Assembly: GCA_025594325.1 (NCBI GenBank)
Contig: JANHCV010000011.1
Location: 310,001 to 374,000 of the forward strand
From: Blastocladiella emersonii ATCC 22665
Lineage: Eukaryota > Fungi > Blastocladiomycota
DNA: 64,000 bases
Direction of reading: 5' to 3'
A model generated the notes under the pieces. It saw nothing but the letters and a program-made list of their open reading frames with translations. It ran no database searches and was not told the DNA's origin. The position numbers and the translations under genes were made by a program. Shown here in pieces: positions 23,972 to 32,274 of the stretch; positions within the stretch are counted from its first letter, which is position 1, and each line of letters begins with the position of its first letter.

Positions 23972-26900
23972 ATGCCGTGGTCGTCCATCTTCTCGCGCCC
24001 GCGCCGCGGCAGCGAGCCGCCGCCGCCGCCGCGCCGCACCTCGCTGTTCCGCACCGTGTCGGTCGAGCACAACGGGATCGCCGCCGGCCTGCGCTCGCAC
24101 CTCGGCAACGCTAGCGATGCCGACGCCGACGTCGATGCTGACTCGGACTCGGACTCGGACGACAACCGGCCGCTCGGTTCGGTCGTCTCGTCGTCATCAA
24201 GCGCGCCATCACACGGCGCGCGCATCTCGCTGTCGCAGATCCTGGCGTCGCCGACGCTGACGCGCCAGTTCCAGACGTACCTGGTGCGCGTCCACGCCGA
24301 GGAGAACCTGCACTTCCTGCTGCGCCTGCGCGAGGTGTGTGCCGCGCACGCGGGCGCCGGCGTGGGGGCGTGGGACCCGCGGCTCGCACACCGCGACGCG
24401 CGCGCCCTCGTCGACGAGTTCTTCACCCACAAGTCGCCGCTCGAGCTCAACGTGCCCGCCGCGATGCGCCGACGGCTCCTCGTCGCCCTGCGCGCGCGGC
24501 AGCGGCTCATCTTTGGCGCGCCGCCCGCAACGGGTGCGGCGCCGGCGACTGGGACCGCGACCATGGTCCCCTCGCCGACGCGCCGGTCGGCCGGCAGTGG
24601 CAACCCGCCGCTGCAGTCCGGCTGGGTGCCGAAACGCATCTCGTCGGCGTCCGGCGCCGCCGCGTCGCACCTGCCGTCGCCGCCGCTCTCGTCGCCCGCC
24701 ATGTCGCCCGTCACCTCGCCCAACGTGTCCCTGGGGTCGTCCCCGCGGCGCTCCTTTTCGCCGCTCTCCCCGGCGCCCTCGCCCGCAGCGTCGCCCGCGA
24801 TCCCCGTGCTCCCGACGATCCCGGGCTCGCCGACGCCCTCGCACGCGTCCGTTTCGACCGTTGTCGCTCCCACAACGTCGCACCCATCGATGGCCGTCAT
24901 CGCACCGTTCCTCGGCGGCACCCCGCCGCCGCTGCTCCCGCTCTACACTTCCTCGCGCGCCGCGTCGCCCAACCCGCCGCTCGTCCCCATCGCGCTGCGG
25001 TCCGTCGGGTCCGTCGACTTTGACGACTACCGCGCCGTCAACGCCGTGCCTGACTCGCTGCGTAGCTCGCCCACCGTGTCGCCGCCGCGCCAGCAGCACC
25101 ACCACGGGAGCCGTCGCGGGCGGCCGCGCGGGTACAGTGTTGCCAGCGAGGAGGAGGACGAGCTCAGCGACGCCGACTCGCTCGAGCTGTTCGCCGGCGA
25201 CGAGATGATTGGCGGGAACACCAGCAGCAGTAGCGGGCCCGACCTCGACGAGGACGAGGAGGGAGACGACGAGTACGACGAGGTCGCGGCCGAAACCACG
25301 CTCGGGTCCGTCGACCAGCACCGCAAGCGCGTCGCGACGCCGTCGCTGCGCAGCGTCGATGCGACCGTGTCCTCGAGCGCGGCCTACTTTGCCGCCTTCG
25401 TCGAGGTCGAGAACCACGTCGCTGACCTCCTCGTCCCGCAGCTCAAGACGTTTGTCTCGATCGCCGACCAGACGTACGCTTCTCTACCCGGACCCTCACA
25501 CAACATCGACTAACCCCCCCCCCCCTCCACTCCGTAGCCTGGCGACGATCCCGCGCGTCCCGCAGCGCAACCAGAAGCGTGTGGTGATCATCGGCGGCGG
25601 CTTCTGCGGCTCCCTCCTCGCGCGGATCCTGGACCCCATGGACCGTTTCCAGGTGTGCCTGATCGACACCAAGCCGTACTTCGAGTACACGGCGGCCATC
25701 GTGCGGGTGATCCCGGACCCGACGGCGGACGTCGTCACGTTCCCGCACGCGAGCTACATCCGGCACGGCCAGCTCGTGCTCGGGTACGTTGACGCGGTGG
25801 CGCGCGACCACGTCGTGCTGCAGGGTGCGGGCGACACGACGCGGATCCCGTTCGACTACTGTGTCCTGGCGACCGGGTCGGCCTACGCGTCGTCCATCAA
25901 GGCCGCCAATATCTCCTCGACGTACCGCGCCCGCAAGCTCAAGTACGACTACACCAAGCTCGCCAAGGCGCGCACCGTGCTCGTGATCGGCGGCGGGTCC
26001 GTCGGCGTCGAGATCGCCGCCGAGATCGCGTCCGTGTTCGGGACCAAGTCGCACAAGCCCAAGGCGCTCACGGGCGCCGCGCAGCGCGCCGCCGAGCGCG
26101 CGGCTGCCTCGGCCTCCTCCGACGCCGGCGAGAAGCCCACGGCGGCGGGCGACGCCGACGGCAACGGCGCCGCCCAGCCGCGCGCGAAACGCGTGATCCT
26201 GGTCGACGCGCACACGTCGCTGCTACGCCGCTGCCCCGCGCGCGCGGGCGCCAAGACGCTCGCGTACCTGCGCGACGAGCTCGGCGTCGAGGTGGTGCTG
26301 GGCGAACGCATCGTGTTCCACGACGAGCGCAACCGCATCTTCCGCGCGCGGTCCGGCCGCGTGTTCCGCGCCGACGCCGTCTACCTCGCCACGGGCCCGA
26401 TCCCGCAGACCAAGTGCATGGAGCCGTATTTCGGGCATCTCCTGACCCCGCCGCTCGTCGCGGGGGCGGCGGCGCCGGGGGTGCCTGAGAGCCCGCTCAT
26501 TGGTGCTGCGGCGGGTGGGGGGATGGATGGGAGTGGGTTTCTCGGGCTCGGCGCGACCGCGGACGAGGTCGCGGCGGTGCTTGGACCTGACCCCGTCGCG
26601 AGCGCGGCGCAGGCGGCGGGATCGGGCGGCAAGAAGTCGTCGGGCAAGAAGGACGACGACGCGGCGGCGGGCGCAGCGACGATCCCGCGCGGCCGGCGCG
26701 TGCAGGTCCTGCCCACGCACCAGCTGCCGGGCCACGGGCACATCTACATCGGCGGCGACTGCTGCTCGACGGACGAGGAGAAGCTGGCGCTGACGGCGCA
26801 GTGCGCGGCCATCACGATCGCGCGCAACATTGTCCGCGCCGAGAAGGGCAAGCCGGCGATCGCGCGCGGCGCCAAGGGCACGCGCCCGCTGATGCCCGAC

Positions 26901-27317
26901 CCGCCGATCCAGCTCATCTCGCTCGGCCGCGCGTCCGCGCTCGCCATCGTCAACGGCGCCGTGTTCCTCGGCCCGTCGTACCTCCGGTACAAGTGGGACG
27001 AGCTCAAGGCGCTCTACTTTGCGTACCTCCAGGACCAGGACCTCCCGATGCCCCGCACCCTGCGGCTCATGTGGGGCCAGCCGCCGAACCGCCTCGGCGC
27101 CGACGGCGACGGGAGCGCGGCGGCGGCCGCGGCCGCGGCGCTGTTCGGCCGCGCGTGGAAGCCCACGCAGGCCGCGCGGAGTACGTCACCCGGATCGCCA
27201 CGCCGGCCTGACTCGCCCGCGGCGGACTCGGTCGGGTCGGCGTCGTCGGCGACCGCCAACGTCGCGGAACCCGTCGCGCTCGGGCTCAGCACGCTGCTCG
27301 AGTCGCTCCGCGTCTGA
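23972..27317 (+). CDS. RGS-domain + AMID/FSP1(AIFM2)-like FAD/NAD(P)H oxidoreductase fusion, ~1093 aa, 2 exons
   Basis: RGS motifs SLSQILA..FQTYL..HAEENLHFL..EFF..SPLELNVP and FAAFVEVENHV..L..F. Intron 25474-25537 (GTACGC..GACTAAC..TAG) joins in frame to VVIIGGGFCG, VLVIGGGSVGVEIAAEIA and IYIGGDC. Confidence 0.8.
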
Positions 27318-27724: not shown

Positions 27725-30700
27725 ATGCCAGCGACCTCCATCTCGGGCCTGTTCAAGGCCGCGGCGCTCGCGATCCTCGCCGCCCTGCGCGACCTGGTGC
27801 TCGGCTTCTTCCGCGTCGTCCTCGTCCCGCTAGCCAAGGCGATGGCCACGTTCCTGCGCACCGTCGTGTGGCAGCATGGCATCAAGGGTACGCCTCGCGG
27901 ACGCACGCACGGTCCACCCAGCTGACACCCCGCACACCAGGCGTGCTGTGGAGCATGGTCGTGCTACCGCTCGGCATCATCGGCGGCCAATTTTTCTTCC
28001 TCCTCGTCAAGGCCGTGTGGTACGGCCCGTTCCAGACGCGCCAGATCCTGTTGGATGGGATGCTCGGCGCCCCGCGCGCGTCCGTCGTCCTCAACCACCC
28101 GTTCCAGGTGTGGATCCCGACCGCCGGCTTGACGCGCGCCGCCGGTATCGTGTTCGGGGTTGGGATCGGCCTGCGCAACTACCTCGAGCTCGTCCTGACG
28201 CTCGCCCGGTGCGCGTGGTACGGGCCCGCGCCTCGCCGACTGCATAACCCCGACGGGCTGTTCGGGGAACCGCCCGCGACCGTGTACCGGCACGCCGTGT
28301 CCCCGTTCCTCGCTGCCGTCGTCGGGTGCGGCGTCGGCCTGCGCCCCGTCGCGTCGCTGCTCCTCGTCGTCCCGTCGTTCATGTTCTACGGCGTCTCGCC
28401 GACGCTCACCGCGCGCCTGCGCGTCGTCGGGTTCCGCAAGGCTGCCGAGCCGTGGCAGTCGCGCTTCGTCTCCCCCGTCCTCGGGTTCGTCCTGGGCCTC
28501 GGGTTCGGTTTTCGCCTGTACGAAGCGCTGGTCGTCGGCCTCCTCTACATCTGCACGATCCACGCGTACCTGGTCGCCCTCGGCGCGTGGCGCGGTATCT
28601 CGCCCGCGCTATACTGCGCCGACGGCTGGTTCTCCCCGCCGAACCCTGCCAAGTTCCCGTTCCACCCAGACTGCCGGTCGCGCGCCACCTCGCGCGCCGC
28701 CAAGGCCTTCGGCGCGATGCTCACGGGCGGGCTTGGCGTGCGCAACGTGCTGAACTTGGTGACCGTCGCGCTCCGCGCCGCGTACTACGGCGCTGGGTCG
28801 GCGCACCTCGCGTTCCGCGCGGTCGATTTCGGGCCGCCGGGGTACACGATGCGCACGCCGCTTGGCAAGGTGTTGGGGGTGGTCCTCGGCCTCGGCGTCG
28901 GGTGGCGGTGTCTCCTCGAGGCCCTCGCGATCGCCGCGTTCGCCGTCGCTCTCGCCGCGTGGTACACGGCGCGCGGCGCGGTCCTCGGCCCGTGGCCCGC
29001 GGTACGCATCCCGCACGGCCGCGTCTCCCCGCCGATGGCGGGGGAGGATGCGTACCCAAAGCGCGGAATGCGCGCGTTCGGGACCGCGGGTGCCGTCGTG
29101 TTCGGGCTCGTGCTCGGGTGGCGGTGGGTCGCGGACCTCGTGTCCGCCGTCGCGCTGTGCTCGTGGTACGGCGGGATCAAGTGGGCGCAGATCCGCGGCA
29201 CGCGGTCGATCCTCGGGCCGCCCGCGTCGGTTTGGGCGGACGAGCCGTACGACGCGTGGCGGCTCGCGCTGAGCGCGCCGGGGGCGTTCGTCGGGTACCG
29301 CGTGCTCGTCGACGCGGCGCTCGTCGCGGTCGTCGCGCTGTACTCGGCGGTGCTCGGCGCCGTGCTCATGTCGGCGCGCGCCGCCCGGTGGGTGTTCGGC
29401 CACGCGCGCGAGGTCGTCGTGCTGCTCGCCATGGGCGCGTGGTGGGGCGCCGTACCGCACGCCGTGTACTGCCGCGACGGCCTCCTCCCGCCGCCTGCCG
29501 TCCATGTCCCGTCGTCGAGGTGGCAGGCGAACGTGCTCGCCGTCGGCAGTGTCCTGGGTCTTGGCGTTGGCGTGCGTAACGTCCTCAACGTCCTCACGGT
29601 CGCGTTCCCCGCGCTCTGGCACGGCGCGCTACCCGCGCACGTATTCTTTCCCGACGGATACATTGCCGAGGACTTCGAGGTCGAGGAGCGGATGCGGCAG
29701 CAGGCCGACGCGGTGCTCGCGGCGGCGGCATCGCAGACGTCGGCGGCGTCGGCGCCCGCATCACCCATTCTGCCCACGTCGAGCCCGACCACCGCCTCGA
29801 GACCGTCGGCCGCGGCCGCGACCACCGCCGCCAACCAGATGAACACGCCGATCGGCCGGGTATTCGGCGCCCTCCTCGGTGTCGTCGGGCTCAAGCGCGT
29901 CGTCGACGCCGCGTACATCATCGTCGCGCGCGGCCTGTGGTACGGCGCGTGCCCGCAGTTCTTCGACCTGCCCGACTCGCCGATGCGCGACGAGATCGGC
30001 GACCCGCCGCAGTACCGGCACTGGACGGGCAACGTGCTGGGCGGGCTCGGCGGCGCCATCGTTGGCCTGCGGTGGGTGTTTTTGGCCGTGTTCGCGGCGC
30101 TCCGTGGGCTCTGGACCGGCGCCGCGCCGCGCTTCTTCCACGCCGACGAGGGCCTGCTCAAGTCGCCGTCCGGGTACTGGAAGTCGCCCGTCGCCGCCGT
30201 TGTGTTCGGGACGGCCGGCGCGTGGATCGGCGTGCGCGCGGTGCTCAACGCCGTGACCCTCGTCCCGTTCGCCGTCTGGTACGGCGTCCTGCGCAAGGAG
30301 ACGGCGCTCCCGCACAGCGTGCTGGGGAGTGCGAAGCGCGAGCTGCGGTCGCCGCTTGGCATGGCCATGGGCCTCGTTTTGGGGGTGGGACTCGGGCTGC
30401 GCACGTACATCGACCTCGCGTTCCTGATCCTCGCCGGTGCGTGGTACGGCGCCGCGCCCAAAGTGTTCACGATGCACGACTGCCCGCTCAAACCGTTCGA
30501 CCGCGACCTGCCCACCGTCGTGCGCGCGCTCGGCGCCGTGTTCGGGCTCGTCGTCGGCGTCCGCCAGGTCCTCGTGTTCCTCGTGTTCCAGATCCCCTTC
30601 GCCGCGTGGTACGGGCCCGCGCCCGAGGTCCTGTGTCTGCCGCCCTCGGTCACCGTGTTCCGCAGCGCCATGATCCGGCCGCCGACGCGCCTCGCGACGC

Positions 30701-32274
30701 GGTTTCTGGGGTTCGTGTTCGGCGCCGGGATCGGCGCGCGCCTCGTGTGCGACCTCCTCGCCGCGGGCATCGGCGGCGCCATCTTCGGGTTCGCCGGGTA
30801 CGTCGTGCGGTCCGGGCAGACGCCGCCGCGCGCGGACCCGGCGGCCGGCGCGCCGCTGTTCATCCGCGTGGTGCGGTCCGTCATGGCCGCCGCGCTCCTC
30901 GGCGGGATCGGGTACGGCGCGCCGTACTCGTTCGCGTTCCTGCGACACACGTCGGCGCCCGTCGTGGGCGCGTGCGTTGGCGCCGCGCTCGGGGTCGCGG
31001 GGATCCAAAACGTACTCAACCTTGCGTTCTACCTCCGCGTCCTCGAGATCGTGCGCGACGTGGTTTTGGTCGTGATCGGCGCCGCGCTCTACGTGCCCAT
31101 CTACGTCGCGGTGCTCCTGTTCACGCACCAGGCGCGGTGCGCGTTCAAGGTCGCGCGGTACGTCGCCGCCGACCGCTTGTTCCCGCAGCGGCACCGCAGT
31201 GTCGCGGTGCGGTCGGCGGCGAGCATCATCGTGACGTGGGGCGCCGCGGCGGGTGTCGGCGTCGCGATCGCGCGCGGGCTTCCGGGCGCTACGACCCTCA
31301 TCATCATCGCAGCGGCCGTGGGCACCGCGCTCGTCGTCAACCTCGTCTCGGTCATCGTGCTCCGCGTCTACAGCCGCACCATGTTCCGCATCGGCGGGTG
31401 GCCGATCGCCGAGACGACCGTGCTCGAGCGCGACGAGGTCGCGGCGCTCAACCGCCACTTCTACCACGCGATCCGCCAGGCCAAGCTCGGGCTGCGGTCC
31501 GACCCCGTCGGCGCGATGCGGTTCTATATCCGCGATTTCGGGCTCATCTCGCCCGACGAGCGCAAGCTCAAGGTCATGTACGAGCTGTTCCTCGACGCTG
31601 CCGTCGAGGTGTCGGACGGCCGGCCCGTGCGCCAGGTCATTCGGCGGCCGGCCGGGCAGCAGATGACCGAGGCGGAAGCACGACCTGACAACAACGGAGC
31701 GGTACGCAGCGAAGCACAGCTCCCGGGGTACAACTCACAACAACCGGCCTCGCAGGAACCGGACACGGTGCCGCCCGAGTCGATCCCGCTCGCGCCGTCT
31801 CCGACCGTCGAAGCGCCGCTGCCAGCAACCGAGGTGCTCCCCGGAACGGCCAGCACGGAAGCGGGCGGTACGCTGTCGCCGCCCGCGATCCCCGGCTCGT
31901 CGCTGCTCCTCCCGCGCACCCCGCCGCCGCCCTTCGACGCGTCGTCGTCGCTGCAGCCGCCGCGGTCCGACCTGCTCGAGGAGACGCCGCAGTACGGCGA
32001 GCTCAGCGCGGTCGCGATCCAGACGCTCGACGAGGCCACGTCCGAGGGGTCCTTCGCGGTGCGCGAGATCGTGCACGTCCGTGCCGCGGCGCCACCACCC
32101 GGCCCGGAGGCAGGTGCGAGCGCCGACCAGCTAGGCCCGAGCACGACGGTGCCTGACCGGGTCGTCCTCGTGGTCCACTTTGCGGACAACACGGATATGG
32201 CGATGCTCGCGCGCGGGTTCAAGCCCAGGTCGCTGGCTATTGTGCGGCATCCTGTCGTCGTTGTGCACGAGTAG
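27725..32274 (+). CDS. Large multi-pass membrane protein (~1498 aa) built from ~14 WYG / glycine-zipper repeats; unknown family
   Basis: Exon 27725-27887, intron 27888-27940, then a long exon. Recurrent W(Y)G..GxxxGxGxGxR + hydrophobic helix units; Pro/Ser-rich C-terminal tail. Confidence 0.8.

Follow-up and report, generated by a model that had tools for sequence, protein, structure and literature searches.

The window analysed here is a stretch of 64,000 nucleotides (nt) from the genome of the blastocladiomycete fungus Blastocladiella emersonii ATCC 22665 (GenBank assembly GCA_025594325.1, contig JANHCV010000011.1, positions 310,001 to 374,000 of the forward strand), and the gene in question, deposited as H9P43_008137, occupies positions 23972-27317 of it. 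Its product links an RGS box, the module of the proteins that chiefly set the timing of heterotrimeric G-protein signals, to a flavoprotein resembling FSP1 (AIFM2), a much-studied guardian against lipid peroxidation whose activity depends on membrane recruitment. On strong comparative evidence this fusion is one real two-exon gene of B. emersonii, and sequence comparison places it in a family that is found in fungi outside the Dikarya and in their sister Nuclearia, so that this gene is not alone in its architecture.

Gene model

An open reading frame (ORF) on the forward strand runs from ATG 23972 to TAA 25511-25513, and a second, downstream ORF ends at 27317; in a word search the latter was matched at 100% identity by the GenBank protein H9P43_008137 (1093 amino acids, aa). 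The first-pass annotation of this DNA, which was made from the sequence by itself, had joined the two ORFs in frame through a 64-nt intron, and its coordinates proved exact. The gene comprises the following parts:

23972-25473, forward strand: exon 1, codons 1-500 and two nucleotides of codon 501, its translation being residues 1-500 of H9P43_008137; it encodes a disordered N-terminus and the two halves of the RGS box with the insert that separates them
25474-25537, forward strand: phase-2 intron of 64 nt, with a GTACGC donor, a CTAAC branch-like site, a poly-C tract and a TAG acceptor
25538-27317, forward strand: exon 2, the last nucleotide of codon 501, codons 502-1093 and a TGA stop; it encodes a linker and the FSP1-like flavoprotein, followed by a disordered tail

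The CTAAC lies 23 nt upstream of the 3' TAG, and retention of the intron takes the frame to the stop at TAA 25511-25513. When the intron is removed the junction codon 501 reads AC/C (Thr) and the two frames are joined; compared separately, the translation of 23972-25471 equals residues 1-500 of the deposited protein and that of 25539-27314 equals residues 502-1093, with Thr as residue 501. The protein starts MPWSS, and a start of the form MP... is also seen in B. britannica. The surroundings of the locus are GC-rich (66-76%). Annotation of the B. emersonii genome was by the ab initio predictors of funannotate, transcript input not being mentioned (PMC9730499). The deposited model, being ab initio and identical to that of the first-pass annotation, is thus not independent evidence for the splice, which we assessed by comparison with relatives.

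Comparative evidence for a single fused gene

The fusion does not depend on the intron at 25474-25537, because relatives encode it without an intron there. In B. britannica a single exon (residues 1 to about 350) encodes the entire RGS region together with the first GxGxxG motif; in Allomyces a single ORF (locus L002, 3170-4948) contains RGS helices 4-6 and, beyond an insert, the last RGS helices and the start of the Rossmann domain; in Sorochytrium the RGS box and the flavoprotein start fall within the same exon; and in Piptocephalis tieghemiana a 515-aa protein with RGS and Pyr_redox_2 domains is one uninterrupted ORF. The Nuclearia member is a single transcriptome unigene. A mis-fused gene model was rejected, since relatives carry the same fusion in a single exon, ORF or transcript.

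Protein-level conservation of the exon-1 frame, which encodes the last RGS helices, extends to the splice donor itself in three other Blastocladiomycota, including B. britannica and Allomyces, and from the last RGS Phe to the KRVV motif there are 19 residues in spliced B. emersonii, exactly as in the unspliced Allomyces ORF; these two observations argue that the joining of the frames is not due to chance. Only two in-frame ATGs are available to a stand-alone enzyme, one at 25359, inside exon 1, and one at 25638, past the FAD-binding GxGxxG. The first was rejected as a start because the exon-1 frame, and not that of exon 2, is conserved there. It is therefore highly improbable that the locus makes two separate products, an RGS-only protein ending at TAA 25511-25513 with the intron kept and an oxidoreductase translated alone: the existence of ATG 25359 in the exon-2 frame and the fact that the deposited model is a prediction would favour this, but the conserved frame, the four intron-free relatives, the spacing shared with Allomyces and the position of the next ATG all stand against it.

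A phase-2 intron in the linker between the RGS box and the enzyme was found also in Halteromyces (AT/C; locus L003, 3534-3633) and Jimgerdemannia (CA/C; locus L006, 1173-1271), 12 codons before the KRV motif in both, the B. emersonii intron (AC/C) being 13 codons before KRVV; it is absent from B. britannica, Allomyces, Sorochytrium and Piptocephalis. These positions are suggestive of one ancient intron at the seam of the fusion, which may have been lost in the other Blastocladiomycota and in Piptocephalis.

With regard to gene models in relatives, the annotated Allomyces macrogynus protein AMAG_20413 (595 aa; GG745370.1) is N-terminally truncated, RGS helices 4-6 being encoded upstream in the same open frame, and an assembly gap (a run of N) in GG745370.1 covers the expected helices 1-3.

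The RGS box

The RGS box of the B. emersonii protein is split, its elements being distributed as follows:

24215-24541, forward strand: N-terminal half of the RGS box, residues about 82-190, helices 1-6, delimited by Pfam PF00615, the RGS10 alignment and model confidence (predicted local distance difference test, pLDDT, 80-96)
24299-24307, forward strand: EEN motif, residues 110-112
24443-24454, forward strand: ELNV motif, residues 158-161
24551-25348, forward strand: insert in the loop between helices 6 and 7, residues about 194-459, disordered, rich in Ser, Pro and Ala and acidic towards its C-terminal end
25349-25473, forward strand: C-terminal helices of the RGS box, residues about 460-501, pLDDT 90-97, the last helix continuing to residue 502 in exon 2

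The first-pass annotation had described a Ser/Pro/acidic insert of about 300 residues before the last helices, and such an insert is present, with a length nearer 270. It is composed of 18% Ser and 15% Pro and becomes acidic toward its end. Its length varies among relatives, from about 270 aa in B. emersonii through about 95-120 in B. britannica to about 35 in Sorochytrium; Allomyces has one too, and in the alignment it is absent from the remaining family members. The Pfam RGS profile PF00615 matches the B. emersonii protein with 27.5 bits against a cut-off of 23.9, over residues 86-173, which correspond to profile positions 1-80 of 117, and in Mucorales orthologues that have no insert the RGS box is contiguous and positions 2-103 of 117 are matched.

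A search of PDB with the single sequence of the N-terminal half gave no match. A profile built from the RGS segments of the family matched RGS10 (3e-14) and RGS4 (4e-9), as well as RGS2, RGS5, RGS17, RGS8 and RGS16, and reached SNX25 at only 2e-3; matches of RGS10 and RGS4 type so far above SNX25 argue that the sequence is of the canonical GTPase-activating protein (GAP) type. In the same alignments the family motif AEEN falls on SEEN of RGS10, and LELNV on its Asn loop, positions that we take to be the counterparts of Glu87/Asn88 and of Asn128 in RGS4 numbering. Both motifs are present in B. emersonii, and among 40 family members the Asn is retained in 32 for EEN and in 29 for ELNV. Counterparts of G-alpha contacts were mapped at Glu87, Asn88 and Asn128 of RGS4, out of a set that also includes Asp163 and Arg167 of helices 7-8. 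GAP activity of the box would be in keeping with these features.

Whether an RGS box divided in this way would refold was a question raised with the first-pass annotation, and in silico it does: the two halves are predicted to form a complete nine-helix RGS fold. The AlphaFold2 model gives both halves pLDDT values of 80-98 and the insert values below 50. Because of the insert, Foldseek aligned only the N-terminal half of the split model, at E values above 1e-3; trimming of the low-pLDDT residues before comparison by VIA-align resolved the whole fold. Model residues 84-512, thus trimmed, align to RGS3 with Z 15.2 and a root-mean-square deviation (rmsd) of 1.8 A over 117 of 127 residues, and to RGS4 from its complex with Gi-alpha-1 with Z 14.7 and an rmsd of 1.8 A over 113 of 116. 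The aligned range spans both halves (model residues 1-420), and the best 15 matches are all RGS or RGS-like.

Ahead of the RGS box, the disordered N-terminus twice contains the consensus Arg-Arg-x-Ser/Thr of protein kinase A type, as RRGS (24002-24013) and RRTS (24032-24043). These motifs show no obvious conservation in B. britannica and, in an Arg-rich proteome, may be a matter of chance.

The FSP1-like flavoprotein

The enzyme part begins shortly after the RGS box and contains the following features:

25569-27146, forward strand: FSP1/AIFM2-like flavoprotein, residues 512-1037, with two dinucleotide-binding domains, recognised by Pfam Pyr_redox_2, sequence, Foldseek and VIA-align
25593-25610, forward strand: first GxGxxG, the FAD-binding Rossmann motif, GGGFCG, residues 520-525, near-invariant over 75 homologues
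25989-26006, forward strand: second GxGxxG, NAD(P)H-binding, GGGSVG, residues 652-657, followed by Glu659, the counterpart of FSP1 E156
26049-26186, forward strand: first enzyme insert, Ala-rich, residues about 672-717, following helix 1 of the NAD(P)H domain
26451-26693, forward strand: second enzyme insert, Ala/Gly-rich, residues about 806-886
26751-26759, forward strand: GGD motif, residues 906-908, its Asp being the counterpart of the Asp in the GD motif of FSP1
27147-27314, forward strand: disordered tail at the C-terminus, with a short predicted helix (residues 1084-1092) at its end

That an RGS domain is here combined with an oxidoreductase of the FSP1/AMID type, as had been proposed, is borne out by Pfam, which recognises both RGS and Pyr_redox_2 (the latter with 76 bits), and by three comparisons that each place FSP1 first. 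It is the best PDB sequence match of the family (7e-20, with the Halteromyces orthologue as query); it is the best Foldseek match (E 1.7e-20, TM score 0.83 by target); and in VIA-align it reaches Z 40.8 with an rmsd of 2.3 A over 348 of 364 residues at 24% identity, as against Z 32.8 for type 2 NADH dehydrogenase (NDH-2), 30.7 for sulfide:quinone oxidoreductase, 22.6 for AIF and 22.4 for glutathione reductase. A structure search with the model of the whole protein returned flavoprotein matches only.

Both GxGxxG motifs and the GD motif, reported as intact at the outset, are so, and the two Ala/Gly inserts described with them are likewise in place, both with low confidence in the AlphaFold2 model. 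Over 75 homologues the two GxGxxG motifs, the Asp that closes the first beta-alpha-beta unit, the sequence ATGS, Glu659 and GGD are invariant or nearly so, and B. emersonii has them all; the near-invariance of these cofactor motifs argues for a working enzyme. In each of the eight members aligned, the second strand of the NAD(P)H domain ends in an acidic residue, a hint of a preference for NADH under the general Rossmann rule.

Past the long disordered tail, the proteins of B. emersonii (27255-27314) and B. britannica both end in a short Leu-rich segment, which might serve as a short linear motif or as an amphipathic anchor.

Distribution and history of the family

A profile word search, which scored only the best 8000 candidates by shared words, found more than 100 database proteins in which RGS and Pyr_redox_2 are combined. 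The members come from most genera of Mucorales, with two or three per genome, and from Umbelopsis and Jimgerdemannia; from Piptocephalis and Syncephalis; from Blastocladiella, Allomyces and Sorochytrium; and from Nuclearia. They thus cover Mucoromycota, Zoopagomycota and Blastocladiomycota, together with Nuclearia as the sister of fungi. A Cladochytrium protein aligns to the family without a Pfam RGS match. No RGS-bearing protein of Dikarya or animals was among the matches listed, and with scoring confined to the 8000 candidates that share most words this lack of matches is not proof of absence. In the ESM Atlas a 59-member Mucoromycota cluster bears the RGS domain in 98%. Members are deposited as 'hypothetical' or 'RGS domain-containing protein', and now and then as 'alternative NADP(H) dehydrogenase' or 'Apoptosis-inducing factor B'.

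A quick tree of the flavoprotein domain was built by maximum likelihood from a set exclusive of FSP1 and Dikarya relatives, and several of its branches are long. In it the fused members form one clade with an SH-aLRT support of 100, separate from stand-alone proteins of about 345 aa from metagenomic or archaeal sources. Groups within the clade follow taxonomy, Blastocladiomycota being supported at 97, and Mucorales are divided among at least three clades of paralogues. The tree, which does not date the event, is consistent with one old fusion that has been passed on vertically.

Some members are further elaborated. A protein of metagenomic or SRA-derived origin (P0117, 1146 aa) has a DEP domain ahead of RGS and Pyr_redox_2 and sits on a very long branch of the tree, and in Cladochytrium replicatum (P0108, 1098 aa) and Syncephalis fuscata (P0111, 1080 aa) there are about 290-460 extra residues N-terminal to the RGS-like segment.

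The first-pass annotation had held that no characterised protein has this architecture. This stands insofar as we found no paper on one; the architecture itself is present in the more than 100 database proteins above, and the B. emersonii model had already been deposited as a hypothetical protein, so that the value of the finding lies in recognition of the family rather than of the locus. Full-text literature searches returned no description of an RGS and Pyr_redox fusion, a result that leaves room for a prior mention in another catalogue of RGS architectures, that of Anantharaman et al. 2011 (PMC3396428); the fusion is also missing from the main text of the survey in which de Mendoza et al. 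2014 (PMC3971589) treat such architectures.

Relationship to known systems

The fold of the enzyme part matches that of FSP1/AIFM2 (PDB 8wik, 8jsc, 8yo8) from end to end, and both GxGxxG motifs, the Glu equivalent to E156 and the GD motif are common to the two. In contrast to FSP1, the B. emersonii enzyme has the two Ala/Gly inserts, a tail of about 55 aa and EY in place of HH, and where FSP1 has its N-terminal Met-Gly myristoylation site there is instead a 511-residue extension that contains the RGS box. We call the protein FSP1-like, and not an FSP1 orthologue, because the myristoylation site is lacking. NDH-2, yeast Ndi1 and the sulfide:quinone oxidoreductases, which act at membranes on quinones, have the same fold of two dinucleotide-binding domains (Z 28-33), but all of these score clearly below FSP1, and the C-terminal membrane-anchoring domain of NDH-2 is absent here, as judged by alignment ranges. 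For glutathione, CoA-disulfide and thioredoxin reductases, which are disulfide reductases within the same Pfam family, the fold scores are lower, with Z 21-25.

The likeness of the RGS box to those of R4/R12 type (RGS4, RGS10, RGS2, RGS3, RGS8, RGS16) extends to the profile match, the nine-helix fold of the model and the counterparts of Glu87, Asn88 and Asn128; unlike them, the B. emersonii box is interrupted by some 270 disordered residues and has a flavoenzyme fused to its C-terminal side. An RGS or RGS-like domain is combined with a catalytic domain in one chain also in the RGS-RhoGEFs (p115RhoGEF, PDZ-RhoGEF and EhRGS-RhoGEF) and in GRK2, and EhRGS-RhoGEF (4gou) was matched by the RGS box of the family in sequence as well as in structure. 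By analogy the same logic may apply, in which active G-alpha recruits an enzyme and is then switched off, with the difference that the attached activity is that of a nucleotide exchange factor or kinase in those proteins and of a redox flavoprotein in B. emersonii.

Proposed function and alternatives

The first-pass annotation had suggested that the protein could couple G-protein signalling to redox or quinone state. We propose that the product works as a G-alpha-coupled effector enzyme at a membrane, a reading suggested by sequence to which we would give a probability of roughly 0.55. FSP1 reaches membranes through an N-terminal myristoyl anchor, and since the RGS box sits where FSP1 has that anchor, it would take over targeting or gating. 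It would dock on lipid-anchored, membrane-bound G-alpha-GTP and would speed GTP hydrolysis by G-alpha, like RGS4 and RGS10; docking would place or gate the attached NAD(P)H:quinone reductase at that membrane, where the enzyme would reduce acceptors of ubiquinone type, as FSP1 does.

Several points weigh against this proposal. The splice in B. emersonii rests on comparative evidence, the deposited gene model being an ab initio prediction, and the functions attributed to all members of the family are read from sequence and models. The structure taken by itself does not separate a GAP-competent RGS box from other types, SNX13 (Z 14.2) and Axin (Z 13.1) being matched nearly as well as RGS3 and RGS4, and the counterpart of Asn128 is missing in about a quarter of family members. 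In the enzyme part, the His-His of the DSFHHN segment of FSP1 is Glu-Tyr in B. emersonii, so that the electron acceptor may differ from that of FSP1.

The direction of control might be the reverse of the one proposed, the flavoprotein being a sensor whose NAD(P)H/FAD or quinone state reshapes the RGS box and thereby tunes the deactivation of G-alpha, in which case metabolism would regulate G-protein signalling. Such coupling would suit the linker that leads from the last RGS helix to the first Rossmann strand, which is short and has a near-invariant Pro, and the confident modelling of both domains in one chain (predicted template modelling score, pTM, 0.64, although 43% of the chain is disordered); a redox-modulated RGS protein, SNX25, is moreover reported to exist (PMC11259961). 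We nevertheless consider it unlikely, as conservation of the catalytic motifs is no less strict than in true enzymes.

In another alternative, which we rate as improbable, the RGS box is a scaffold or targeting module without GAP activity, as in Axin, GRKs and SNX-RGS proteins, and the protein is an FSP1-like reductase with a protein-binding head. The near-equal structural matches to SNX13 and Axin would agree with this, as would the partial Pfam RGS coverage in B. emersonii and the presence of Asp or another residue at the Asn128 counterpart in 11 of 40 members; against it, the family profile favours GAP boxes of R4/R12 type over SNX25 and the rgRGS of RhoGEFs by some 11 orders of magnitude, and the B. 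emersonii protein retains both EEN and ELNV.

The proposal of a G-alpha-coupled effector can be extended, tentatively and at odds well short of even, to the history of the family: an ancestral holomycotan FSP1 may have been gated by G-proteins, active G-alpha recruiting or activating (or both) a membrane NAD(P)H:ubiquinone reductase through an RGS box that times the signal, and the arrangement may then have been lost in Dikarya and replaced by the myristoyl anchor in animals. Were this so, receptor signalling would directly set local quinol, and hence the defence against lipid peroxidation or plasma-membrane redox. More generally, the conservation of the fusion across Blastocladiomycota, Zoopagomycota, Mucoromycota and Nuclearia points to a possible direct, and unexplored, link between G-protein signalling and membrane quinone redox. 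The Mucorales, with their several paralogues, include agents of mucormycosis. With compact orthologues that are free of introns or of the insert (Piptocephalis, Halteromyces), the idea is open to direct testing in vitro, and Mucor and Rhizopus offer genetics.

Neighbouring sequence

The next ORF downstream, at 27868-32274 on the forward strand, encodes a protein of 1468 aa that contains many repeats of a hydrophobic 'WYG...' unit.

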